Assembly: GCA_002269645.1 (NCBI GenBank)
Contig: NIVC01000129.1
Coordinates: 418,755 to 482,754, forward strand
Direction of reading: 5' to 3'
DNA: 64,000 bases
Source: Macrostomum lignano
Taxonomy: Eukaryota
A program made the translations under genes and the position numbers. This document shows positions 3,582-62,827 of the stretch, one piece after another; position 1 is the first letter of the stretch; the number at the start of each line of letters is the position of its first letter. The notes beneath the pieces were generated by a model, which saw nothing but the letters and a program-made list of their open reading frames with translations, was not told the origin of the DNA and made no database searches.

Positions 3582-3856
3582 GGGTCAAGTTGATAAATTC
3601 TGTTACTTATGCTCAAACTAAACAACAATGCAAAACAGTTTATCTCACATTTAGATTCCCCACCAGTTTATAATGTACAGTAAAATTTTGAAAAAGGGAA
3701 GATGCTCTTTCTCTGGTAGCCCTGTGTTGAAATGTTTTCGTGGTAACCTTTTGTTCACAATGGCAAACGCATGACTACTGGCATTGATTAGCTGTCGAAA
3801 ACTTGCCTAAAGCAGGTAAACTTCAAGCTCAACTTCGAGCGAGTAGTCTTTCTTAC

Positions 3857-5083
3857 CTGCAGAAACTCGAAGCTGCTGGACCGGTGGTGCCCCAGAGCCG
3901 CGGCGCTTCCCTCGTCGACGGGCGAATCGCGACTGCGGCTCTCCTCCGGCTCGGAGCTCTCCTCCGACGGCAGAGGGCGCGGCCGGCCGCTCGGCGGCTT
4001 CATCTTGCGAGCCGAGGCTACGGCGATGATCGACGCGTCGTCTGCGGCGGAGGCGGTGCCGTCCACGAAGGCGGCTGACGTCAGCGAGGCTGTCGATGTT
4101 GTTGAAGTAGGCGGCGGCGGCGGCGCTGGGGCTTTGCGGACGCGAGCCGGGCGCCTTGGAGGACTGCCGCCGTTTGATGAGTCGGCGCTGTCTTGCGAAC
4201 GGTCCCGCTTTCTCAGGACCAGCGAAGTAAGGTTGTTGAGATCTGACGCGGCCGCTGAGCTGCTGCCGGGGCCCAGATTCTCGCTGCTGCTGGCCTTGCT
4301 GATGAGCTTCTTGTCTGGCAGCACTTTCACCACAACTGACGCTACGGAGGTTGTTGCACCATTTTCTGACTGCGCTGCTGCTGCGGTGGCGGAATTTCCG
4401 TTGCGAAGACTGCCTGGACGGCTGCGAGTGATCTGCTGCTGCTGCTGCTGCTGCTCAGAGCCGCCAGCGACACCGCCGGCCTTTCCGTTGGCAAGCTTAG
4501 ATCGAAACCGCTTGATGAGGTCGTCCTTCAGACTGTGGGTTCGCTTGACCACAATCGGACACTCGGCTACAGCAGAATGTTGCTGCTGCGTTGAGGCGGC
4601 CGAGGCAGCGGCTGCGGCAGCGGCGGCTGTGGCGGACGAGGCGGAGTTGGCAGTCACGATGATCGGACCGGAGCTGGACTTGCCGCTGCCACCGTGATGC
4701 TGTTGCTGCTGATTGTCGGGCGACTCAAAGTTGTCCATATCTTGACGGCTAGAAAACTGCGAGGGTTGCGGTGAGTAGAGCATGGTTCTGATTGACATGC
4801 CACCTGCCGGTTTCTGATGCTGCTGCTGTGGCTGCTGCTTCTGCAGGGGCTGCTGCTGTTGCTGCTGCTGCTGCTGCGACTCGAACTCAACACTCTGACG
4901 CACCAGCGACTCGTTAGACGATCCCGTTGACGTTGTTCTCCGACGGTGCCGCGGCGACTGACCCGAACTGCTGGCCTGCGGCACGGCGGGATAAGCCGGT
5001 TCCGCTCCCGGGCTGAGCTGAGGCGGCATCGGATGGCTGGCCGCGGCGGCTACGCTGCCAGCGCTGCCGGAGTCCCAGGGCAT
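3857..5083 (-). CDS. Gene A coding exon 1: uncharacterised low-complexity (Q/S/A/P-rich) protein, ~560 aa in total
   Basis: GC-rich 409-codon frame from ATG 5083 (MPWDS...) to FEFLQ, ending at donor CAG|GTAAGA (phase 0). No domain recognised. Upstream exons cannot be excluded. Confidence 0.75.
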
Positions 5084-6430
5084 TTTGCGTGTCAAGTGAC
5101 AATAACAAACACTAGCAGCGATTTCCGGAGCAAGAAAATAACGGAGAGAAATTAGTCCAAAAACAGAAGCTGCAAAGAACGGTTAAATATACGAGGTATG
5201 TTAGCCAATCTAGTTTCGAATGGCATGCCATAGTTCGGCTAGGGTAGCGAAAACATACAACCAAACAGCCTCAACTCAGGTGTACTCTGCTCCGAGGCCC
5301 ATTCTGCATGTCGCCCCCCCGGCCCCACCACTCCAGCAGTGGTCCGATGGGGTGTGTCGGTGCAAAACACGCAACACGCGCACGGAGAGGCTTGCGCAGT
5401 TGAACCACTCGAGAGAGCAGGCAGATATTAGGCGGGTATAAGGGGGGCATTTGTGTAAGGGGGCACAAATGGAGGGCGGCAGCAGAGGCAAAACTGCTTT
5501 TACAGACTTGTGCGTGCAGTGCAGGCAAGTGAACAACCCCTCCCCCTAGTGACTCGGTGTGCGACCTCAGGCAGCTGAGTCATATATATTATGGTCAATG
5601 CTAAATTTGCTTAAAACTCGTCCAGCTCTAGCACATGTTGCCATGACAGTTAAAAAGCCAAACTTAGGCATTAGCACACAAGCTACCTACTAAACGGCCT
5701 GTTACCAGATTCTAGTAACGTAGAGTAGTTTAATATAGCAGTGAGGCCTAGAGACCTATTGCTTCACAATCTGAAATCAGGTACTAGCTGGTCTACCTGT
5801 ATCTACAAGAAATGAAAGGGCAGAAAGCAAAAAAGATACAAAACTACAAAAGTGTAGCGCTGTTAAAAACTGTTTCTAAGAAAGCAACTTTTATGCTGAC
5901 ATTCGCTTCTTAATATACTTTGTAGCGACCATTGATATCCACAAACCATGAAGAGAAAGAGATTCCCTATTCAACGAAGCACCTGGGACAGTTCACCCTT
6001 AGCATAACTTCATTTTCCATTTTAGGCATTCGCTAATAGCAAGCCGTTTAAACAAGTTTTATTGCCGACAATACAAGTTGAGCAACTCAACAAAAGTGAG
6101 CAAGCCATCAATGGTCTAATAACCCTCGCGTCCCCACACGCTGGAAGAAAAGTTGTAAAAAAAATCTTAAAGAACGCCACGTCAATGGTCTTATTTAAAG
6201 TGAGCACGCAGCACTGCGAACAGCTCGAACTTAATGAGAAAGTAAAAAGACCTGCATCTATCGAGCACACTTCAAATTTACTGCACAGAAAAATGTGTTC
6301 GACTGTTGAGACACAGTGGAAGAAAGAAATGCTTACAAAGTGCAAGCTGTGAGGTCCGGCAAACATAATAAGCAAGTTACCTGGCTAAAGAAGAATAAAG
6401 ACCATTTCATACATACTAAAATTGGGCTTA

Positions 6431-6905: not shown

Positions 6906-7619
6906 CTAGCTAGAGTGCATTGACCAAATTGTGGAATGGCTGGGAGTCGTTAATGAAAGTAAAAACAACAAATCAAGAAGCAAAGCACTAAAATATTCTG
7001 GCAATATTCCGTCAGTGTTCAGGAGCAGGTGGTGCAAGCATGAATAATGTTAGCACAGGCGATGCAATGAGGTTGATGATTTATTTGTTAATTCAAACAA
7101 ACAGACAAACAATTCTTCGCAATCCATCTGTCGCACGAATTTAAACGTGTAACAAAAGTTAAATAAAGTCAGAATATTCATGTTTAAGAAATAGATGAGC
7201 AATATTTACTCATAGTACTGCCTGCAAGTTTGGAATACATTAAAACATAATAGCTTCAAAATACAATCAGACAAATTCGCAAAAATTCACAAGTAGCAAT
7301 TCCATGCTAGCAGAGAAATCAATGGCGGTAGTGACACAGAAATGGAAGCAAAATATCTGCAAAAGAACCGATTACAATAAAAGTACGAATGAAGAAGGCC
7401 AAAAAAGTGCACACAGCATTTTTGAGGGTTTTGAAATCAGTAGTGAAGGATTTATTGGCTCTGGGGCTGCTGCGACCTGTTGGAGATCAGAATTCTGCAT
7501 GCGGCTGATGCGGCTAGGGAATGGTAATAAACTGATGAGAGCGAATGCCTAATGCAATACATAGATTATAGAGATTATAGAGACAGATGTAGGGGAGAAG
7601 GAGAGGGTAGATAGGAGAG

Positions 7620-8655
7620 TGAAGAGGGAGAGAGTAGAGTGGAGAAGGAGAGAGTAGAGTGTTGAGGGAGAGAGTAGAGTGTTGAGGGAGAGAGTAGAGT
7701 GTTGAGGGAGAGAGTAGAGTGTTGAGGGAGAGAGTAGAGTGTTGAGGGAGAGAGTAGAGTGTTGAGGGAGAGGGTAGAGTGGAGAGGGAGAGGGTAGAGT
7801 GGAGAGGGAGAGGGTAGAGTGGAGAGGGAGAGGGCAGAGTGGAGAGGGAGAGAGTAGAGTGGAGAGGGAGAGGGTAGAGTGGAGAGGGAGAGGGTAGAGT
7901 GGAGAGGGAGAGGGTAGAGTGGAGAGGGAGAGGGTAGAGTGTTGAGGGAGAGAGTAGAGTGGAGAGGGAGAGGGTAGAGTGTTGAGGGAGAGGGTAGAGT
8001 GGAGAGGGAGAGGCTAGAGTGTTGAGGGAGAGAGTAGAGTGTTGAGGGAGAGGGTAGAGTGGAGAGGGAGAGGGTAGAGTGGAGAGGGAGAGGGTAGAGT
8101 GGAGAGGGAGAGAGTAGAGTGTTGAGGGAGAGAGTAGAGTGGAGAGGGAGAGGGTAGAGTGGAGAGGGAGAGGGTAGAGTGGAGAGGGAGAGGCTAGAGT
8201 GGAGAGGGAGAGGCTAGAGTGGAGAGGGAGAGAGTAGAGTGGAGAGGGAGAGGGTAGAGTGGAGAGGGAGAGGGTAGAGTGGAGAGGGAGAGGCTAGAGT
8301 GGAGAGGGAGAGGGTAGAGTGGAGAGGGAGAGGGTAGAGTGGAGAGGGAGAGGGTAGAGTGTTGAGGGAGAGAGTAGAGTGTTGAGGGAGAGAGTAGAGT
8401 GTTGAGGGAGAGGGTAGAGTGGAGAGGGAGAGGGTAGAGTGGAGAGGGAGAGGGTAGAGTGGAGAGGGAGAGGGTAGAGTGGAGAGGGAGAGGCTAGAGT
8501 GGAGAGGGAGAGGGTAGAGTGGAGAGGGAGAGGGTAGAGTGGAGAGGGAGAGGGTAGAGTGGAGAGGGAGAGGGTAGAGTGGAGAGGGAGAGGGTAGAGT
8601 GGAGAGGGAGAGGCTAGAGTGGAGAGGGAGAGGGTAGAGTGGAGAGGGAGATGAA
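7620..8655 (+). repeat. 20-bp polypurine minisatellite
   Basis: Unit ggagagggagagggtagagt, ~50 copies. Confidence 0.95.
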
Positions 8656-9684: not shown

Positions 9685-40233
<30,549 letters not shown>

Positions 40234-40630: not shown

Positions 40631-41689
40631 TCAGGCTCAGGGGTAATGTCAGTCAGTGTACACACGCGCACACAAAGACAGGGCTGCACAGAGACAAACA
40701 CTGCTCTCACAACTGAGTGGACCGAATAATGAGTACGCCAAGCCAGCTTAAATCTGATAGCCAGCTAGCGAAGGCCCCCACCGATATCAGGACGAGTGGA
40801 AAATTGCTTAGCCAATGAAACGGCGGCACCAGATCTTAGCTAGCTGAGAGAGAAGAGATCAAGAGACGAGTAACAGACCTTCGGCGTAAACCCCTATTAG
40901 CCAAAACCCGAAATCTCTGATAAGAACAGGCTGCTTCTTTTGCATTACTCAAGACTAACCTAAGTGGAAGCGTGGTGGCAAAGTTGAATCAGCATCTAAG
41001 GCATATATTATTAATTAAATAGTGACGATTCAGCTGGCACCAGAGGGTCCCGAACAACAAATATCAAATAGTTATAGTTCGCTAAACAACTATAAAGGCA
41101 AAAAAGAACAAGTCAGTAACAAGCGTACAAACAAACTTCATTTTCTTGATCCTGAAACTTTAAAACAGTAGCTTAATTGCTTTTTTATTACTTAAAGTCT
41201 TCTCAAAACTCGTTTATTAAAATTGTTAAGATTTGAGAAGCAAGGATTTTGACAGAGTTGTAATCTAACATTGATTTAGACCATCGTCAGGCATATTTAC
41301 AGAAATATTTTTATATTAAATATTTATTTCCTGTCAAGAAATTCCCACACGAGAATTGACAGACTATGCTCACTAAATAACACCGGATAGTTAATAACAA
41401 TTATAACGCCATACTAACCACACTACTAAGAGTAACAATAAGCAGTGGTTTGACTACCCAGAAAATTCGCAATAATTAGTAAAACAATTTCAATTCAAGC
41501 TGTTTGTAGAAATTATACTTAATTGAATATTTTGAACGAGCTTTACTATTGATGGAATAATAAATGCCAGCGAATCCCACAGTCATCATCATTCCTATGA
41601 CCATTCACTTCATTCATAAAATCCTTCAGTCACTTACATGACCACTTACTCATATTAATGATCATCCTGTCACTCATATGGCCGTTCAG

Positions 41690-42155
41690 TCACTCTAATG
41701 ATTATTTAGTCACTCCTATGACCATTCAGACACTCTTATGACCATTCGCATCCGGTCACACTTATGACCATTCAGTCACTCTTATGACTATTCAGTCCCT
41801 CTTGTGACTATTCAGTCCCTCTTGTGACTATTCAGTCCCTCTTGTGACTATTCAGTCACTCTTATGACTATTCAGTCACTCTTATGACTATTCAGTCACT
41901 CTTATGACTATTCAGTCACTCTTATGACTATTCAGTCACTCTTATGACTATTCAGTCAATCTTATGACTATTCTGTCTCTATAATGACTATACATTCACT
42001 TTTATGACCATTCACTCGCTCTTATGATTATTCGGTCATTCTTATGACCATTCAGTCACTCTCATGACCATTCACTCGCTCTTACGAGTATGACCATTCA
42101 GTCACTCTCATGACAATTCAGTCACTCTTATGACTATTAAGTGCTCTTATGACCA
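41690..42155 (+). repeat. 20-bp minisatellite
   Basis: Unit cagtcactcttatgactatt, just 3' of the RRM-ZnF stop codon. Confidence 0.9.
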
Positions 42156-42176
42156 TTCAGTCACCCCACCAATCGC

Positions 42177-43496
42177 TCAGTCATTCTTATCGCTATCATC
42201 ATCGTCCTCATCTTCGTCAGTGGCTTCATCGTCTTCCATCTCGCCGCGGCGCCGACTGCCGCCAGCGGGCTCAGGCTCAGTCTCCGAGGCCGCGGCTGAG
42301 GACAGTTCAGCGCCGGCGGCAGCACCAACAGGGCCGTCGCCGCCGCTGCCTTCAACCGTGGCCGCCGCGATTTCGCCGCTGGTGTTGGCACTGCCGCCGA
42401 CAGATGAGGCAGCGGCGGCGGAGGCCGCGGTCTCGCCGCCGCCAATGCCGGCAGCGAAGACGCAGTTGGTGTACACGCCAATCTCATGCTCAGCCTGGCA
42501 GTGGCGCAGCAGCTCCCAGCTGCTGAGAAACTGCTTGCCGCACTTGGCGCAGTCCAGCATCCTGGGTTCACCCTTCAGCTTGCACAGGCAGACAAACCGG
42601 CGTCGGCAGCCGTCCTGCTTGTGCGAACTGAGCCGGTCCAGGTTGTCGAAAACGTCCTTGCAGTTGCCGCAGACCAAGTAGTCCCGGCCGCCGCTGATTC
42701 TATCGCGCGAGGCGCCAACTTGAGACAGCTTGCCGGAGTCGAAACCGCCGCTGTCGTCCTGACTGCCGAGCCGTCGGGGTCCCAGACGCTCCTTCACACT
42801 GAGGCCGCTGCTACCGCCGCCGCCGCCGCCGCTGACAACGCTCGACGCCGACGAGCCGCTGCCGCCGCCGTGTCGGTCTCGCCGATTCTTGGGCTCAGAC
42901 GCGATGTTCACGTCGATGGTCTGGCCGGCGTAGACGCGGCCGTCCTCGCGTTTGCAAGCGGACCGAGCTGCCGGCTCTTCGACAAACTGCACGAAAGCGA
43001 AGCCGTTATGGACGTTGACTTCCGTCAGGCTGCCGTATTTGCTGAATATTCGCTCCAGATCGGCTCGGCCCAGCTCGTTCGTGTTCAGATTGCCAATGAA
43101 CACGCGACCCTTGGGATTCTGGCCGCTTCCACCTCCGCCGCCGCCGCCGCCGCCTCCGTGATGCTGGCGATGATTCTGGGGTCCATGCTGATGATGCAGC
43201 ATTTGCGGAGGCTGCTGCTGTTGCTGCATCATGAACTGCATATCCATAGGGCCTGGGCCTTGCATTTGCATCTGGGGCGGCGGAGGCGGCGGCATCACGG
43301 CAGGCATGGGCGGCCCCGGCTGCGGGTAGGCCATAAACGGCTGCTGCTGCTGCTGCGGCGGCTGCTGGCCATAAGCCATCATTGGCATCTGGCCCGGATG
43401 CGTCATAGGCTGCTGCTGCACCATTGGCATGCTCTGCTGCATACTGCTAACTGGGGCCATTGGCATCATGCCAGGTATGTGCGGATTGACCTGCAT
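42177..43496 (-). CDS. Intronless protein: P/Q/M-rich N-terminus, hnRNP C/RALY/NCOA5-type RRM, BCL11-like CCHC and C2H2 zinc fingers, acidic tail
   Basis: RVFIGNLNTNELGRADLERIFSKYGSLTEVNVHNGFAFVQF...EDGRVYAGQTIDVNIASEPK; DYLVCGNCKDVFDNLDRLSSHKQDGC; CAKCGKQFLSSWELLRHCQAEHEIGVY; one uninterrupted 439-aa ORF. Confidence 0.9.
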   Translation of the reverse strand: MQVNPHIPGMMPMAPVSSMQQSMPMVQQQPMTHPGQMPMMAYGQQPPQQQQQPFMAYPQPGPPMPAVMPPPPPPQMQMQGPGPMDMQFMMQQQQQPPQMLHHQHGPQNHRQHHGGGGGGGGGGSGQNPKGRVFIGNLNTNELGRADLERIFSKYGSLTEVNVHNGFAFVQFVEEPAARSACKREDGRVYAGQTIDVNIASEPKNRRDRHGGGSGSSASSVVSGGGGGGSSGLSVKERLGPRRLGSQDDSGGFDSGKLSQVGASRDRISGGRDYLVCGNCKDVFDNLDRLSSHKQDGCRRRFVCLCKLKGEPRMLDCAKCGKQFLSSWELLRHCQAEHEIGVYTNCVFAAGIGGGETAASAAAASSVGGSANTSGEIAAATVEGSGGDGPVGAAAGAELSSAAASETEPEPAGGSRRRGEMEDDEATDEDEDDDDSDKND

Positions 43497-43643: not shown

Positions 43644-43813
43644 CATGCTTGGGCGCAACCTAGGGATTCACCCGGCCGTTTCTATTGACAACACACACAT
43701 TTAAGTCGCTATTGGACGGAATAGTAGTCACGTGACTGCTCTCAGCCAATAGCGACTTACGTGTGTGTTGCCAATAGAAACGGCCGAGTGATTCCCAAGG
43801 TTGCGCATGTATG
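43644..43813. mobile_element. Fold-back MITE, hAT-like (8-bp TSD)
   Basis: ~60-bp arms gcgcaacctagggattcacccggccgtttctattg... / ...ccaatagaaacggccgagtgattcccaaggttgcgc; ends CAT...ATG; direct repeat aatataag at 43636-43643 and 43814-43821. Confidence 0.8.
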
Positions 43814-50270: not shown

Positions 50271-51430
50271 AGCTAAAAATATTAAGGTGCTATGGAACTT
50301 AAGTAATGTCTAGAGAGCTGAAAATTTTGTCAAAGACTATATCATATTATTGTGTTAAAGCTTTGATTTTCACGCTTTGTAACAATGAGATCTTGGTCAG
50401 GCTTGGCTCAGAACTTTTTTAGTGCTTCTTGTATATTGCTTTTTAATATTGTGATCATTTTTATTTAACATAACCAGTTTTTATGCCAAATACATCATTT
50501 TAAGCCTTTTAATCCCTTATTTATTGATAAAAAATCTTATTTAACCAGATTAGCCAAAACCTTAGAGATAATACTTGCAAGAGTCATATGCATCAGTTTT
50601 ACCTTCTAATATACTAGGCTCTATTAGCTTCTTTTTTTGCTCTTAGCTTTTAGCTTATTATATACTAAGATGAAAAAAACTCAATATGATAATTAAAATT
50701 AAATATAAAGGTCTAGTACTATTTATGCAAAAGTAGTATTCATATTCTAATTTTAGTTTAAATTTCAATCTATATATATAAAACAAAAGATTGAATACTT
50801 CCCATGTATAAAATAAAGATACTAATCCTAAAATTTTAGGATTATAGCAAAAATTGGAATCTTGACCCTTTATATTAGAAGGTATATTAGAAGGTAAGGC
50901 TAGCTAATATAATAATATAGAAGGCTAATATAGAAGGTAAGCCTCTATATTAGAAGGTAAGGCTAGCTAAGTAGCTTTGATAAACCTAAAACTAGAGGAA
51001 ATAATAATGTTGATAGTTAAATTTAAACCTGTCTTTACTAAGACTAAGTAGTAAATAAAGCAGGCAGCCTACAAATAGGCTTACCTTTATAAGGCATATC
51101 TATAGGTTGTAGCCAGTCATATTAATATAGTATCTGGCAGTCTCTTAGTCATCATTGTTTTGTAGGCTAGTTTATAGTTTGCTAATCTAAAATTGCAGAG
51201 CTGAGAATTCCACTCAGCTCTGCAATTCTGATATCCAAAGACTATATCTTTAGTACAGAGTTGATATTTTCTTTCATCCAGTAGCGATGTTAATTGATTA
51301 GGGAATTTTAGCCTCTGTCAAAGCTATCATTCAAATTGCTCTCTGCAGAGCGTCAGCCGGGTGGCTTAACCGGGACCGAAGCAGAGAAAGAGAGCCAAAA
51401 GCAGCAAAGAAAGCTGATTACTCAGAATCC

Positions 51431-51784
51431 ATGGGTCGCTACAGTGTCAAGCCAGAGAGCGCTTCAAAGTGCGCCAAAGCGCGCGGCTCCTATCTGCGCG
51501 TGCATTTCAAGAATACGCGCGAGGCTGCTGGCGCGGTGCGCGGCATGCCACTAAAACGGGCGCAGCGCTACCTGAAGAATGTCATCGCCAAGAAGGAAAT
51601 TGTGCCGTTCAGGCGCTTTATGGGCGGCACTGGCCGGCATGCCCAGTCTAAGGTGTGGGGCACAGCCACTGGCCGCTGGCCGAAGAAGTCCTGCGAATTT
51701 CTGCTGCAGTTGCTCAAGAACTGCGAGAGCAACGCTGAGTTCAAGGGATTGGACGCTGATCACCTGGTTATCGATCACATCCAG
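51431..51784 (+). CDS. RPL17: 60S ribosomal protein L17 (uL22), coding exon 1
   Basis: MGRYS...[18 protein letters not shown]...[27 protein letters not shown]...HIQ; donor CAG|GTGTGG. Confidence 0.98.
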
Positions 51785-51804
51785 GTGTGGCTGGCTTAAA
51801 TGTC

Positions 51805-52960
51805 TGCAGAGAGTAGAGAGGCAGATTCTCAACAGCTAAGTGAGAGCAGAGAGGCAGATTCTCAACAGCTGAGTGAGAGCAGAGAGGCAGATTCTCAACA
51901 GCTAAGTGAGAGCAGAGAGGCAGATTCTCAACAGCTGAGTGAGAGCAGAGAGGCAGATTCTCAACAGCTAAGTGAGAGCAGAGAGGCAGATTCTCAACAG
52001 CTAAGTGAGAGCAGAGAGGCAGATTCTCAACAGCTGAGTGAGAGCAGAGAGGCAGATTCTCAACAGCTGAGGGAGAGCAGAAGAGAGGCAGATTCTCAAC
52101 AGCTAAGTGAGAGCAGAGAGGCAGATTCTCAACAGCTGAGTGAGAGCAGAGAGGCAGATTCTCAACAGCTGAGGGAGAGCAGAAGAGAGGCAGATTCTCA
52201 ACAGCTAAGTGAGAGCAGAGAGGCAGATTCTCAACAGCTGAGTGAGAGCAGAGAGGCAGATTCTCAACAGCTGAGTGAGAGCAGAGAGGCAGATTCTCAA
52301 CAGCTAAGTGAGAGCAGAGAGGCAGATTCTCAACATCTGAGTGAGAGCAGAGGCAGATTCTCAACAGCTAAGTGAGAGCAGAGAGGCAGATTCTCAACAG
52401 CTAAGTGAGAGCAGAGAGGCAGATTCTCAACAGCTGAGTGAGAGCAGAGAGGCAGATTCTAAACAGCTGAGTGAGAGCAGAGAGGCAGATTCTCAACAGC
52501 TAAGTGAGAGCAGAGAGGCAGATTCTCAACAGCTGAGTGAGAGCAGAGGCAGATTCTCAACAGCTAAGTGAGAGCAGAGAGGCAGATTCTCAACCAGCTA
52601 AGTGAGAGCAGAGAGGCAGATTCTCAACAGCTGAGTGAGAGCAGAGAGCCAGATTCTCAACAGCTAAGTGAGAGCAGAGAGGCAGATTCTCAACAGCTAA
52701 GTGAGAGCAGAGAGGCAGATTCTCAACAGCTGAGTGAGAGCAGAGGCAGATTCTCAACAGCTGAGTGAGAGCAGAGAGGCAGATTCTCAACAGCTGAGTG
52801 AGAGCAGAGGCAGATTCTCAACAGCTGAGTGAGAGCAGAGAGGCAGATTCTCAACAGCTGAGTGAGAGCAGAGGCAGATTCTCAACAGCTGAGTGAGAGC
52901 AGAGGCAGATTCTCAACAGCTAAGTGAGAGCAGAGAGGCAGATTCTCAACAGCTGAGGGT
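51805..52960 (+). repeat. RPL17 intron: 33-bp minisatellite (~35 copies)
   Basis: Unit gagagcagagaggcagattctcaacagctaagt. Confidence 0.95.
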
Positions 52961-53051
52961 AGAGCGCAAGAGGCAGTTTCTCGGTAGGGGAGCAGAAGAA
53001 AGTTCTCTATTATTAAGGTAAAAAAGCGCGCCCTTTCCGCCTCGGTCTCAG

Positions 53052-53255
53052 GTGAACCGCGCCCCTAAGATGCGCCGGCGCACGTACCGCGCCCACGGCC
53101 GCATCGGGCCCTACATGTCTTCGCCGTGCCACGTTGAAGTGATTCTAAACGAGCACGAACAGGTGGTAGCCCGGGCCGCGGACACCGAGGAGACCACGGC
53201 GAAGAAGAAGGAGAGCAAGAAGAAGCTTAAGAAGGCCAAGCTGCGAGGCGAATAG
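53052..53255 (+). CDS. RPL17: 60S ribosomal protein L17 (uL22), coding exon 2
   Basis: Acceptor tctcag|GTG; [32 protein letters not shown]; 185 aa in total. Confidence 0.98.
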
Positions 53256-54913: not shown

Positions 54914-55169
54914 AAAATTTTCCACCTCTGACCGCTATCGATAATTGAAAATATCTGCTTAAAAATTTACTGACTTCCAAATCTTTTTCGCGCATTTTGG
55001 TTAAATGTCTCTTCAACTCACCTGCAGCAATTATAAATATGATACACCTTTTTATTTTTATCGCGTTTAAATTTTTCTAGTTTGTTGAATTAATTTTTAT
55101 CTAAGAATTTTTGCCCTTGTTTCATTGCCAGTTTCGAAAATTCGCCTGCACTAGCAACAGATCACAGTC

Positions 55170-56295
55170 CTTCATCATCAGATCCCAATCCAGCATCATC
55201 AGATCCCAATCCAGCCTCATCAGATCCCAGTCCAGCATCATCAGATCCTAGTCCAGCCTCATCAGATCCCAGTCCAGCATCATCAGATCCTAGTCCAGTA
55301 TCATCAGATTCCAGTCCAGCATCATCAGATCCCAGTCCAGCATCATCATATCAATCCAACATCATCAGATCCCAGTCCAGCATCATCAGATCAGATCCTA
55401 GTCCAGCCTCATCAGATCCCAGTCCAGCATCATCAGATCCTAGTCCAGTATCATCAGATTCCAGTCCAGCATCATCAGATCCCAATCCAGCATCAGCAGA
55501 TCCCAGTCCAGCATCATCATATCAATCCAACATCATCAGATCCCAATCCAGCATCATCAGATCCCAGTCCAGCATCATCATATCCCAGTCCAGCATCATC
55601 ACCAGTCCAGCATCATCAGATCCCAATCCAGCATCAGCAGATCCCAGTCCAGCATCATCATATCAATCCAACATCATCAGATCCCAATCCAGCATCATCA
55701 GATCCCAGTCCAGCATCATCATATCCCAATCCAGCATCATCAGATCCCAGTTCAGCATCATCAAATCCCAAATTAGCATCATCAGATCCCAGTCCAGCAT
55801 CATCAAATCCCAAATTAGCATCATCAGATCCCAGTCCAGCATCATCAGATCCCAATCCAGCATCATCAGATCCCAAATTAGCATCATCAGATCCCAGTCC
55901 AGCATCATCAGATCCCAATCCAGCATCATCAGATCCCAAATTAGCATCATCAGATCCCAAATTAGCATCATCAGATCCTAGTCCAGCATCATCAGATTCC
56001 AATCCAGCATCATCAGATCCCAATCCAGCATCATCAGATCCCAATCCAGCATCATCAGATCCCGAATTAGCATCATCAGATCCCAGTCCAGCATCATCAG
56101 ATCCCAATCCAGCATCATCAGATTCCAATCCAGCATCATCAGATCCCGAATTAGCATCATCAGATCCCAGTCCAGCATCATCAGATCCCAATCCAGCATC
56201 ATCAGATTCCAATCCAGCATCATCAGATCCCAAATTAGCATCATCAGATCCCAGTCCAGCATCATCAGATCCCAATCCAGCTTCATCATCCAAAT
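55170..56295 (+). repeat. 21-bp minisatellite between gene B and the kinase
   Basis: Unit catcatcagatcccagtccag. Confidence 0.95.
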
Positions 56296-58744: not shown

Positions 58745-61700
58745 ATGTCATCCACCAACCTCATCGTGCCAGCGGCGCCAGCCTTTCTCGATCCGCTCAT
58801 CGAGATCGAGTCCTGCTATTACTACGCTGTGCCGAGATTCTTCGGCTTCCACCACCCGAACACTCGCTGGTTGATCGCCATGATCAAGGCCAAGGAGGAG
58901 GACCGGGTCAAGCGGAAGATCGAGCTGAATCCAGAGCTGTTCAAAGGTCGCTACTTCCAGATGGTGGACCATCCGAAACTCTACCTGCCCGATGATCCGT
59001 CTGTTACTCCTATGTTTAAGCGGCAGAGTGTGCTCTACCTGACAGCTTTGGGCATATCTATTTATCTTCGTAGCGTGAGTATTTATTTATTTAATTAATA
59101 GGCCTTCAAAAGGTTTGCGTTGGAGATCAATTAGAGAGCTTGCTCACTTAACCGTTAAACTGTTATCAATGATGACCGTGGCATCCGTGCTTGACTAAAT
59201 TTATTTGTTTGGGGCTTATGTACAAAATTTTGTCGTGGGTTGTCGTGCGACAGGAGTCAGCGAAATGAGCACAATTGCCTTGGCGCTGGTAGTGTGGTGA
59301 TGTCTGTGGTGATGCCGACAGCCCTCCTAGAAAGTTTTTTTTAACCTAGTTAAGGGGAATTGCTGAGATGTCAAGGTTTGTTTAGGGGAATTGCTGAAAT
59401 GTCCAGGATAGGTGGGGGGAATTGTTGAGAGGGTCAATGCTTACGGGGGGAATTGCTGAGATGTCAAGGCAAATAGGATTCACATAAAAAATTTTCGTCC
59501 CTCGCTTATTGGCTGCCCAATAATATTGTTAGTTATTTGCCTGTAATTTTATTTTCACTTTTCCAGATGAGAATTATTTAAAAGCATCAAGAAAATATGC
59601 GAAACCGCTGCATGCAAATTTACCCGCTGGCACATTTCAGCTTCCTCTGATCGACCTGATCTTGTTCCACAAAGACCCATACGGCGCAGTCGTTGGCAGC
59701 CCATACGAGCCGCAGTTTGCTTCGCATCTGCAGGATTTGAAATACGGCGACTTTCACGCGTTCCCGCCGTGCGTGATCATGCTGCGCATGTACTGCTTCG
59801 AGTCCACGGTCAGCCTCCAACAGGCCGGCTGGAACCCCACACAGCCGCTGGCGCTGCCCATGCGACGCCGCTTCGAGCGGAGAGCCTTCTACTTCTACGA
59901 CTGGCTGGAGGCGGCACTCGGCCTACTGTCCGAGCGACCGCTCTACCCGCTGCAGTCGCTGATCCTGAATATGACCCGCAACATGACCATCTACAAGTTC
60001 CTGATGCTACCGACCACTAACCTGCTGCCGCCAACGCCCAAGCAGCGCGTTCCCACCGGTCTAATTGACGTAGAAGAGCTGCCAGTCGGTACTAAAATGG
60101 TTGGAGTTCGTTCCCTATTGGAGATGGCCGAGGACTACGATCGCTACCTGCAGATGCGCAGTTGCGCCATTGAAGTGGCCGCCCTGAAGAGAGAGGCTAC
60201 CGCGGTTGGACTCAACCCGGAGATACTCATGATTCAGGTGAGATTGCTAGTCAGAAAATTAGTTAAAAACACTGTTATAGATACATAGATTATGGGTAAA
60301 ATTCTGTTTTTTTTCTGGTGTTTGATTTAAATTTTAATAATCACCCGCGAGCGTTTTAATAGATAGAATAGGCATTTTGTGTCTCAAAAGACGAGCTCAT
60401 TCCTCACGCAAGGCCCAAGACTACGACGGCTACGTAGCTGACAAGGAGGCAGCCGAAGAGAACGAAAACAACGCCGCCACCGCCGCCCTGCGCAACGCCA
60501 GCAACGTTGCCAACTCGGCCGCGTCCATCAGCGGTTGGTGGCGCAGCTGCGGCCTCGGCCGTCCGCGCCTACCGGACAGGCTGTGGGCGGTTGAACCGGA
60601 CACCCGTCAGCAGCGACTGCTAGCTGTCAACGCTAACAACAGCGCCACGAATGCGGGCAGCGCCTCAACGGCTGACGCACAGAGCCAGCAACGGAACGTC
60701 AGCGCGGCCGCTAAGAAGAAGAAAAAGCCGCGCAATTACGTGTCGGAAGCTCTCCGGGTGTTGTACTACGCGTTGGAGAAGGACAAGACTAGCAAGAGGA
60801 TGCAGGTACGCTGGGGGTCTGGTGTAGTTTTGTAGTTTTGTAAGGGATGATGCCGTGCTTGTCATTTCGTCATGAGTCCAGTACACACCCGAGAACCACG
60901 TGCCAAAGACGATCAGATCGCGAGACATTGTTGGGTTGTCGAGTTCTCATAAAATACCAAACTGAATTTCAGGTGTGCCTGGATTCAATTATTGTTCTCA
61001 GCAAGCGCGGCTTCTTTGTAAACGGCGAACGACTGCCAGCGGACTCATCGCGGGCTCGCGACCTACGCAACGTGGTCACTCTAGTGCTCAACATGATCCA
61101 ACGCGAGCAGGAAAAGCTGGACGTCATATTTGCCAAGATCCAGTCTGGCTATAAGAAATTCCAGCACCTCGAGGAGCACAAAATGCTGGAAAACCGGCGC
61201 CTTGCTTCCGTAGCCAACATCTCTAAAATGATAGCCCTGCTCACACGGATTCTGCTCCACTCGAAGGAGCTCGTGTTCTTTGTCAACTCAAACTTTCCAC
61301 CATTCCCAGCAAACACCGTCGACTTCACCGTTAATTATCGACTGCAGACGAAGTTTAACGACATCAAAATTGGAGTTGTCCAGGAATTCAACTCAATCAA
61401 AGACGGCTGGACCTACCTATCCAAGGAGATGCTGGAGGAGGTGGCGAAGATTAAGTCCATGCAGCTGCACTTCCGCGTTGGCAAGCAGCCGTCAGCGGCC
61501 GCCATCATTGAGGCCAAGAAGGCCGCCCGAAAGTCTGCAATGCGCAACAAGCCGAAGAACAAGAGCAACATGAGCAACACCAACAGCTGCTTTGTCACGT
61601 TCCGCAAGGTGCAGCGGATCCGGGCTCAGCAGCGCCAGCAAGACTGCCTAGCAGTCGGCGATGGGACTCGAACGTCCGCTAAAGAAGCGTTGAATTTATT

Positions 61701-62827
61701 GTCTAAAGAAGCGGCACTGCCAGACTGCACCGGTGAAAGCGAAAATCGTTGGTGGGCGTCTCCTTTGCCACAAAGTCAGACAACGGCAACCGCCGTGGCT
61801 GTCGGCACCGACGCGGACGGCACGCCGGCAGCGGACGCAAACGACATTAGCGAGCAAGCAGCTGTTGATGCGAGCGAATGCTATCAAATCGACGCCGCAG
61901 AAACCGGCCTGGACGAGGAGGCGCAATTGTTGCACGATCTCACCGAAGGATGCGACGGACTCTCCGAGACCGGCTTGCTAATGAACAGTCTTTACCGGGA
62001 GGTGCAGGACTTGCTGAAGTCGCAGGGCGATACAGATTCGGCTGCTACTCGTGTGAGTATCGCTTTTATTATAACAAAATTCCTGTCAGACCCGGGTGTA
62101 TATGTAGGACGCCGTACATTGAAGGGTTTTAGGATTGATCGATGGTAACTCTAGCCATAGTTTTATCCTTCGTCCTAACCATTTTTATGTGTTGAGGGGA
62201 GAAAGGTTTCTATTACTTGTTGTCTGAAAAACGGTAGATTCGTTATAAGACACATGATGAAAATATTATCATGCCTCAACGTGGTTTATTGTATTATATT
62301 CTAGATATATCAAATGCATATTAAAAAGAGGATTGTAGCCTAGTGATTAGAGCGTCGGACTCAAGACTTTAAGGTCGGGGATCGATTCCCGATCCCACCG
62401 GAATAATTTGTGTCCTTGAGCAAGACACCTAAATCTGCATTGCTTCAGTTCACCTTGCTGTATAATAGCTAGGTGCCAGCATTAGCTGGGGTAATTGAAG
62501 GTTGTGTGGCGACCCCCCAGTCCTTGGACTGAACAGCCGTGCGCAGCCTTCAGATGAGCTGTCGGTTGCACATCTGCCCATTAGGGGTGTGTGATCAATT
62601 ATATTAATTATTGTTATTAATAGATTAAAATCCGCAAAGCGCTATTAAATTAAAAAAGCCACCACTAAAAATTTATTTTTCAGACACCTCAGTCAAAGAC
62701 AAACAAAGGCGGATGCGACGACACAGCGACCATCGAACCGAAGCCGGGTACAGAAGAGCGAATCAGCTTGAATCAGTCGAGCTACTGCGGTCGCCAAGGC
62801 ACTGGCTCCGAAGTCTTTGACTGGTAG
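58745..62827 (+). CDS. Uncharacterised protein (gene C), 5 exons, ~860 aa
   Basis: Exons ~58745-59027/59074, ~59567-60237, 60413-60805, 60973-62052 and 62684-62827 (TAG). The last three junctions are phase 0 with good splice sites; the first junction is ambiguous. Family not recognised. Confidence 0.7.
59350..59520 (+). repeat. Diverged copy of the 27-bp-unit element seen at 3113-3380
   Basis: Units ggggaattgctgagatgtcaagg followed by caaataggat...aattttcgtc...gcttattggc, as at 3320-3375. Confidence 0.8.
62328..62542 (+). mobile_element. tRNA-derived SINE with CORE-like central domain (copy 2, full head)
   Basis: A-box tagcctagtgattag, B-box ggatcgattcc, core tgtgtccttgagcaagacacctaaatctgcattgcttcagttcacc; shares its 3' part with 20731-20914. 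Confidence 0.85.

Follow-up and report, generated by a model that had tools for sequence, protein, structure and literature searches.

A putative divergent hnRNP C-like protein of Macrostomum lignano and its bilaterian family with an RNA recognition motif and two zinc fingers

INTRODUCTION

Vertebrate heterogeneous nuclear ribonucleoprotein C (hnRNP C) has, besides its RNA recognition motif (RRM), a basic-zipper-like motif and a leucine-zipper tetramerisation helix, and in the yeast protein Nab3 the RRM is combined with a Q/P-rich low-complexity region. Here we analyse a gene for an hnRNP C-like protein with two zinc fingers from the flatworm Macrostomum lignano, which lies on the minus strand at positions 42177 to 43496 of a 64,000-nucleotide stretch of DNA (assembly GCA_002269645.1, contig NIVC01000129.1, positions 418,755 to 482,754 of the forward strand), called the window in the following. 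An earlier sequence-only reading, made by a model from the letters of the window, had described the gene as a fusion of an hnRNP C-type RRM with the N-terminal zinc-finger module of BCL11. We interpret it as functional and as a divergent, lineage-specific paralogue within an ancient family of Bilateria, which represents hnRNP C/RALY in the invertebrates, and consider this interpretation, including the mechanism proposed below, to be likely.

Two of the described systems close to this protein are outlined here. The Drosophila gene CG42458 is treated as the fly hnRNP C orthologue; its knockdown by RNA interference suppresses the toxicity of TDP-43 in the eye (PMC5570092), and its expression is specific to certain neuron types, marking TmY8, T4/T5, and Mt1 neurons (10.1101/243113). 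In BCL11A, the finger ZF0 tetramerises and ZF1 is predicted to dimerise, both being described as non-DNA-binding self-association fingers (PMC12006351). The hallmarks of ZF0 are 14 instead of 12 residues between the second cysteine and the histidine, and a five-residue hydrophobic helix start, ILIFI, which forms the core of the tetramer (10.1101/2024.12.10.627839; PMC12006351). CCHC fingers are known as protein binders, and the class has no known DNA-binding example (10.1101/2024.12.10.627839). Bcl11a/b have been described as putative paralogs of Zfp296, which may itself oligomerise (PMC5622089).

RESULTS AND DISCUSSION

Domains of the predicted protein

The open reading frame (ORF) is a single exon of 439 codons, with the stop codon at positions 42177 to 42179. 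The RRM (residues 129 to 205, positions 42882 to 43112) carries the RNP2 motif RVFIGNL, as part of RVFIGNLNT, and the RNP1 motif NGFAFVQF, with GFAFVQF at its core, and ends in DVNIASEPK. The Pfam domain RRM_1 spans residues 132 to 194 (E 2.5e-11). The top matches among solved structures are hnRNP C (PDB ID 1wf2, E 2.4e-24; PDB ID 2mxy, E 1.2e-23) and RALY (PDB ID 1wf1, E 8e-22), the next RRM structure being Nab3 at about 2e-12, which puts hnRNP C ahead by ten or more orders of magnitude. The assignment of the RRM to the hnRNP C/RALY type by the sequence-only reading is thus borne out; its additional likeness to NCOA5 is not, since no NCOA5 protein is found among the best 120 of 195 matches.

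The two fingers follow on the C-terminal side. Finger 1 (residues 272 to 297, DYLVCGNCKDVFDNLDRLSSHKQDGC, positions 42606 to 42683) is a CCHC finger with the invariant residues D, C, G, C, H, and C, and its core (residues 276 to 297, CGNCKDVFDNLDRLSSHKQDGC) reads C-x2-C-x12-H-x4-C. Finger 2 (residues 314 to 342, LDCAKCGKQFLSSWELLRHCQAEHEIGVY, positions 42471 to 42557) is a C2H2 finger (H-x4-H) with a family-invariant tryptophan, the core of which (residues 316 to 337, CAKCGKQFLSSWELLRHCQAEH, ...FLSSWELLRHCQAEH) is followed by EIGVY. Between the fingers lies a CxC motif, C303-L-C305 (positions 42582 to 42590), which is frequent in the family. We weighed whether it contributes to a third zinc site, but do not treat it as defining, given that it varies among members and that the linker model is of low confidence (predicted local distance difference test [pLDDT] of about 67).

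The remaining regions are of biased composition. The N-terminal low-complexity region (residues 1 to 115, positions 43152 to 43496) consists of 24% Q, 23% P, and 19% M and is predicted to be disordered; it runs into a glycine run (residues 113 to 125, positions 43122 to 43160), recognised by its composition. A disordered G/S-rich linker (29% G, 23% S) connects the RRM to the fingers (residues 206 to 270, positions 42687 to 42881), and the disordered tail (residues 343 to 439, positions 42180 to 42470) is A/G/S-rich and then strongly acidic, with 33% D and 17% E in the final 30 residues. All parts that the sequence-only reading had listed in one intronless ORF, from the P/Q/M-rich N-terminus to the acidic tail, are therefore present.

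The AlphaFold2 model based on a 36-sequence full-length alignment is ordered only in the RRM (pLDDT of about 97) and in the two beta-beta-alpha fingers (about 89-94), whereas the remainder stays below 65 and the predicted template modelling score (pTM) is 0.34, so that no packing between the domains is predicted. Modelled alone, the finger module again gives two beta-beta-alpha fingers joined by a low-confidence linker (pTM 0.46). Neither Pfam nor AlphaFold2 indicates additional fingers within the 439 residues, where one weak C2H2 match is the only Pfam trace; the protein is thus without tandem DNA-binding C2H2 arrays, confirming what had been stated from the letters about the missing arrays of BCL11.

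A family of RRM and two-finger proteins across Bilateria

We searched 1.84 billion cluster representatives exhaustively with HMMER, using a two-flatworm profile of the finger module as the query, which yielded 538 matches at E<=1e-3, 74 of them at E<=1e-10. The full-length module is found in 102 of the best 150 of these 538 matches, and more than half of the 102 (55 proteins) also have an hnRNP C-type RRM N-terminal to it. Word-indexed searches found nothing with the finger module alone and just 6 proteins with a 47-sequence profile. Most matches of the search with the whole protein were vertebrate hnRNP C/RALY proteins, which align to the RRM only (17-22% of the query); they were outscored by a protein of the cestode Spirometra (P0002), which has the finger module in common as well (45% identity over 75 residues, E 2e-22).

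Flatworm members include trematode, cestode, and monogenean proteins from Schistosoma, Calicophoron, Paragonimus, Cichlidogyrus, and Echinococcus, the last annotated as "Heterogeneous nuclear ribonucleoprotein C", as well as shorter M. lignano paralogues. Further members are found in molluscs (scallops and oysters, "hnRNP C-like 3"), dipterans (Musca, Eurosta, and Aedes), nematodes ("hnrpc-prov"), the brachiopod Lingula ("hnRNP C"), the annelid Owenia, Priapulus, the bryozoan Watersipora, a hemichordate, and amphioxus. The Eurosta and Musca proteins (P0217 and P0223) carry the RefSeq name "transcription factor mef2A", which was presumably assigned in error on account of their Q-rich linkers. 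For the Aedes albopictus gene LOC109622194, isoform X1 (517 residues, P0323) is described as RRM-containing and isoform X2 (449 residues, P0324) as C2H2-containing only; RRM-less isoforms of this kind may account for many of the finger-only insect matches.

In the 47-sequence alignment of the family, exactly ten columns are invariant, namely, the eight zinc ligands, the glycine between the first two cysteines, and the tryptophan of finger 2. The window protein shares the family arrangement of an hnRNP C-type RRM N-terminal to the fingers, the finger-1 pattern D-x-L-x-C-G-x-C-x12-H-K-x3-C, and the finger-2 pattern C-x2-C-x7-W-x-L-x2-H-x4-H with a following aromatic residue (IY/VY). It does not show the basic motif PP.KR.R in the linker, to which NLVSLV or RTLV.L is added in Spiralia, a motif that is not universal in the family. 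PP.KR.R is common to the family, vertebrate hnRNP C (VPSKRQRVS), and RALY (VPVKRPRVT), and because of this shared motif the RRM and two-finger proteins seem to be orthologous to hnRNP C/RALY and to represent it in invertebrates.

Many members lie on contigs of 1 to 3.5 kb from sequencing runs, which, as related genomic genes have introns, suggests that these contigs are transcript assemblies spanning both domains. The combination of RRM, CCHC finger, and C2H2 finger is not novel; it is how hnRNP C-like proteins are normally built throughout the invertebrates. The sequence-only reading, which knew of no characterised protein with this combination and regarded the finger as borrowed, is contradicted here by about 55 cluster representatives across Bilateria, often annotated as hnRNP C. 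It had also raised the possibility that the architecture is already widespread and described, of which the first part applies; as to the second, literature searches, including CG42458 with C2H2, hnRNP C with zinc finger in invertebrates, and Macrostomum with hnRNP, returned no paper on the finger module of the family. The finger pair is not modelled by Pfam either.

Relation of the fingers to BCL11 and ZNF296

Two RRM-less matches of the family search, one of which is named "zinc finger protein 296", show the finger-1 pattern LLTCGxC..FPL..IL.F..HK...C and the finger-2 pattern F[ST].AW.LL.H.Q..H..SIYQ. When the profile is restricted to the 55 RRM-linked modules, these two ZNF296-type proteins reach 61-62 bits over a single full-length domain, whereas generic poly-zinc-finger proteins do not exceed 23 bits per domain. 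On these scores, the finger pair appears to be related specifically to the N-terminal pair of ZNF296/BCL11-type proteins, the comparison being made via the ZNF296-type proteins. The proposed BCL11 link therefore stands for the pair as a whole, and it fails for finger 1, which lacks the ZF0 hallmarks.

The Pfam family CCHC_BCL-11A (Pfam ID PF25491) yields no match at E<=10 either to the complete window protein or to a fragment with its fingers (cutoff, 27 bits), although it matches both ZNF296-type controls with 44-53 bits; RRM-linked relatives obtain 8-15 bits, mostly over the first 11 profile positions. The spacing between the second cysteine and the histidine is x12 in 94 of the 96 modules in which both fingers could be parsed, including the window protein, and x14 only in the two ZNF296-type proteins. 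At the helix start of finger 1, two of the five residues are hydrophobic in the window protein (LDRLS, compared with ILIFI of ZF0), against a family mean of 3.1 and all five in the ZNF296-type proteins. The hydrophobic character of finger 2 is partly kept, with SWELL in the window protein and usually AW[DE]L[LMV] in the family.

Searching the PDB sequences with the two-sequence module profile resulted in generic C2H2 matches only. A deeper profile, in which two ZNF296-type sequences were included, reached BCL11A Z0 at an E value of about 1.6e-3, and ZF0 can be aligned to finger 1 over its full length. With a family-only finger-1 profile, the BCL11A Z0 chains (PDB IDs 9BV0 and 9B4P) are matched at an E value of about 0.05 and with a two-residue gap, which is no better than a generic ZNF473 finger, and finger 1 alone was for this reason not counted as evidence. 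Taken together, finger 1 is not a finger of the BCL11A ZF0 type, and the oligomerisation through such a finger that the sequence-only reading had put forward is not supported, as the x14 spacing, the hydrophobic helix start, and a PF25491 match are all absent.

Proposed function and its alternatives

In the mechanism that we propose, the RRM would bind single-stranded, probably U-rich, RNA like hnRNP C. The two fingers would provide a surface for interaction with proteins, either with itself or with a partner, and would stand in for the basic-zipper/leucine-zipper region of the vertebrate proteins. The disordered Q/P/M-rich, G/S-rich, and acidic regions could add weak multivalent contacts typical of hnRNP assemblies. 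A protein contact is favoured over DNA reading because finger 1 is of the CCHC class, the linker between the fingers is long and variable, the nearest relatives of the fingers are self-association fingers, and finger 2 has, at the helix positions that would contact DNA bases, an invariant tryptophan followed by Asp or Glu in most members.

The finger pair could instead be a second nucleic acid-binding unit, for RNA or for single- or double-stranded DNA, extending or tuning the specificity of the RRM, much as vertebrate hnRNP C owes a higher affinity for RNA to its basic region. The two fingers have the classical beta-beta-alpha fold, the module is part of an RNA-binding protein and is conserved together with its RRM, and in some members there are weak Pfam touches to zf-C2H2_jaz, a double-stranded RNA-binding finger. 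The Foldseek search of the PDB with the module model gave generic tandem fingers only, all of them nucleic acid binding and none significant (none at E<=1e-3). Against such a unit speak the number of just two fingers, their linker without a TGEKP-type connection, and the same class, helix residues, and non-DNA-binding nearest relatives (BCL11A ZF0 and ZF1) that argue for a protein contact, and we regard it as rather unlikely.

A related and more far-reaching idea is that hnRNP C of the bilaterian ancestor already had a pair homologous to ZF0-ZF1, which served, mainly through the tryptophan-bearing finger 2, as the self-association device of invertebrate particles, and that vertebrates swapped in the leucine zipper. 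We consider this idea unlikely as it stands; if it were true, the oligomerisation module of BCL11/ZNF296 and a core hnRNP assembly module would share their origin.

Turning to the gene itself, the ORF opens with an ATG that is preceded, two codons upstream, by an in-frame TAA, and it is annotated as a single-exon gene on its contig. The deposited "hypothetical protein BOX15_Mlig012920g1" of M. lignano (P0001) differs from the window protein only by I7M and A66G. This near-identical form is found on two more contigs, giving three genomic copies in which the ORF and all zinc ligands are intact. Because all ten invariant ligand and tryptophan columns of the family alignment are present, the ORF appears to be a real, intact M. 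lignano gene and not a chance ORF.

Several observations weigh against a functional gene whose fingers bind proteins. The proposed protein contact is drawn by analogy with BCL11A/ZNF296, and precisely the features by which ZF0 oligomerises are missing; there is no ZF0-type interface, and one like that of ZF1 is kept in part. A clear KR.R basic motif, retained by its relatives, is lost from the window protein, which may thus be localised or function differently, or the gene may be decaying. A comparison of nonsynonymous and synonymous substitution rates (dN/dS) between the M. lignano copies has no power, as they show only 3 differences in 1320 nucleotides. The start of the 439-residue product at the first ATG is presumed, as are expression and nuclear localisation.

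With these points in mind, the window copy could be a decaying or non-functional retrocopy or an over-extended gene model, with an untranslated Q/P/M-rich N-terminus and either an internal methionine start or no product. Its single exon, the minisatellite flanks, and the upstream palindrome would fit, as would the loss of the KR.R and NLVSLV linker motifs and an N-terminal low-complexity region that is missing from the paralogue and in which in-frame methionine codons are numerous; the GC-rich region also has long ORFs in other frames. However, the frame is open over all 439 codons, the zinc ligands and RNP motifs are intact and are kept in three near-identical copies, and the more conservative M. 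lignano paralogue is intronless, too, so that the lack of introns is no mark of a dead copy. Decay or over-extension is, in our view, quite improbable, and we keep to the interpretation as a functional, divergent paralogue.

Origin of the domain combination and loss of introns

The gene structures of orthologues date the combination of domains relative to the loss of introns. The coding part of the Spirometra orthologue is split into at least 6 exons within 8.4 kb, the amphioxus gene extends over 28 kb, and a phase-1 intron in the codon before a conserved inter-finger "GEP" lies at the same place in Spirometra and Lingula. In a 718-residue fly protein of assembly GCA_016746235.2, which we take to be a Drosophila species, fingers 1 and 2 are encoded on separate exons. 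In M. lignano, the window gene and a conservative 303-residue paralogue (P0127) are both single-exon genes. Given the shared intron position of the orthologues and the lack of introns in both M. lignano paralogues, the fusion predates the intron loss. The introns disappeared from an already-fused gene in the lineage of Macrostomum, before the two paralogues separated, and retroposition may have been the route. Intronlessness is uninformative about how the fusion arose, and the retro- or shuffling origin that had been read from it is not upheld, the cestode, brachiopod, and fly orthologues having an inter-finger intron.

In the Spirometra gene (Spirometra sp. Aus1, CM118282.1), the annotated start clips the RRM, as "RSRVFVGNLNT" is found in frame directly upstream of the annotated methionine; the deposited model thus lacks the true 5' end.

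Of the two M. lignano paralogues, the window gene is the divergent one. The paralogue P0127 retains IKRARQD and NLVSLV, whereas the window linker has only a degenerate KERLGPRRL in place of PP.KR.R. The Q/P/M-rich extension is absent from P0127, whose RRM begins at about residue 20. The window gene has thus acquired its Q/P/M-rich N-terminus and no longer encodes clear KR.R and NLVSLV motifs. The distribution over Bilateria suggests that the fusion is ancestral and was not made in flatworms, and the absence of fingers from vertebrate hnRNP C/RALY most likely reflects a loss.

The alternative of a novel fusion specific to flatworms, with retroposition or exon shuffling adding the oligomerising finger of BCL11 to an hnRNP C RRM and ZF0-type oligomerisation replacing the leucine zipper, could draw on the single exon, the ZNF296/BCL11 relation of the pair, the full-length alignment of ZF0, and the self-association described for BCL11A and suggested for Zfp296, but it is largely refuted with respect to novelty and origin by the pan-bilaterian architecture and the shared intron position, and the deviating finger 1 further makes it highly improbable.

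Genomic surroundings

A 20-bp minisatellite (24 copies, 81% matches, positions 41669 to 42164) starts 13 bp past the stop codon and is probably located within or beside the 3' untranslated region of the hnRNP C-like gene. A 154-bp palindrome (positions 43653 to 43806), with 46-nucleotide arms that are 91% complementary and with nested 23-nucleotide arms, precedes the start codon by about 160 bp. The arm sequence does not occur elsewhere in the 64-kb window, so the palindrome does not resemble a multicopy miniature inverted-repeat transposable element here.

The window is full of minisatellites, with 45 Tandem Repeats Finder rows of score >=200 and periods from 4 to 129 bp, where overlapping rows may describe one array. 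Examples are found at positions 26446 to 35196, 7600 to 8651, 21808 to 22898, 51809 to 52982, and 55158 to 56288, and a 43-bp unit forms an array of 8.7 kb. Strong GC- and AT-skew blocks at 6-10 kb and 22-24 kb are explained by purine-rich arrays.

Downstream of the hnRNP C-like gene, below about position 40230 on the minus strand, lies a plexin-like gene with PSI, Plexin_cytopl, and Plexin_RBD matches, the model of which crosses several tandem arrays and is therefore questionable. The upstream neighbour (about 51350 to 53255) is a 212-residue Ribosomal_L22-domain gene with introns, showing that the M. lignano genes of this region are not generally intronless. Two further long ORFs, at positions 60847 to 62148 on the plus strand (433 residues) and 3788 to 5095 on the minus strand (435 residues), have no Pfam match at E<=0.01; they could represent either uncharacterised genes or frames that are open by chance in repeat-rich DNA.

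Significance and comparison with known systems

The window gene in itself is ordinary, being an already deposited hypothetical protein and a member of a widespread family. The gain lies at the level of the family, where non-vertebrate proteins annotated as "hnRNP C" have in common a conserved finger pair, whose relatives are the N-terminal fingers of ZNF296/BCL11. Inferences from vertebrate hnRNP C, a leucine-zipper tetramer, to the fly gene CG42458 or to flatworm genes may thus mislead. The family poses the tractable question of how invertebrate hnRNP C particles assemble, and it offers an outgroup for how ZF0 and ZF1 of BCL11A gained their self-association surfaces.

One of the comparable systems is yeast Nab3, whose hnRNP C-like RRM (PDB ID 2xnq, E 2.3e-12) is matched much more weakly than that of hnRNP C and which has no zinc fingers. 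The vertebrate proteins hnRNP C1/C2, RALY, and RALYL have RRMs that are 52-58% identical to that of the window protein, with an identical RNP2 (RVFIGNL) and with KGFAFVQY instead of NGFAFVQF as RNP1. They have no fingers, and the AlphaFold2 model of the window protein in turn shows no long helix outside the RRM and the fingers that would correspond to the vertebrate zipper.

BCL11/ZNF296 proteins resemble the window protein in the order of a CCHC finger followed by a C2H2 finger, and they share the D-x-L-x-C-G-x-C hairpin, HK...C, and F-[ST]-x-W-x-L-x-x-H...H...IY. BCL11A ZF0 (Pfam ID PF25491; PDB IDs 9BV0 and 9B4P) has the x14 spacing with an FPL bulge and a hydrophobic helix start, in contrast to x12 and LDRLS in the window protein, and BCL11/ZNF296 proteins bear DNA-binding C2H2 arrays, which the window protein does not.

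Dipteran members with the RRM and the finger pair are the proteins from Musca (XP_061395688.1), Eurosta (XP_067613387.1), and Aedes (XP_062708330.1), together with the 718-residue protein of GCA_016746235.2, and we infer that CG42458 is of the same kind. Unlike the window protein, the dipteran proteins are much longer (517-762 residues) and have Q-rich linkers and genes with introns. There is also a close likeness to the invertebrate hnRNP C or hnRNP C-like proteins of Echinococcus granulosus (XP_024349431.1), Crassostrea angulata (XP_052716181.1, "hnRNP C-like 3"), Lingula anatina (XP_013382175.1), and M. lignano itself (PAA81510.1). Compared with these, the window protein adds the 115-residue Q/P/M-rich extension, the glycine run, and the strongly acidic tail, and its G/S linker is without a clear PP.KR.R or NLVSLV. 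The order of the parts and the invariant residues are the same, and the finger modules are 35-56% identical, with 44% for Spirometra and 46% for the M. lignano paralogue P0127.

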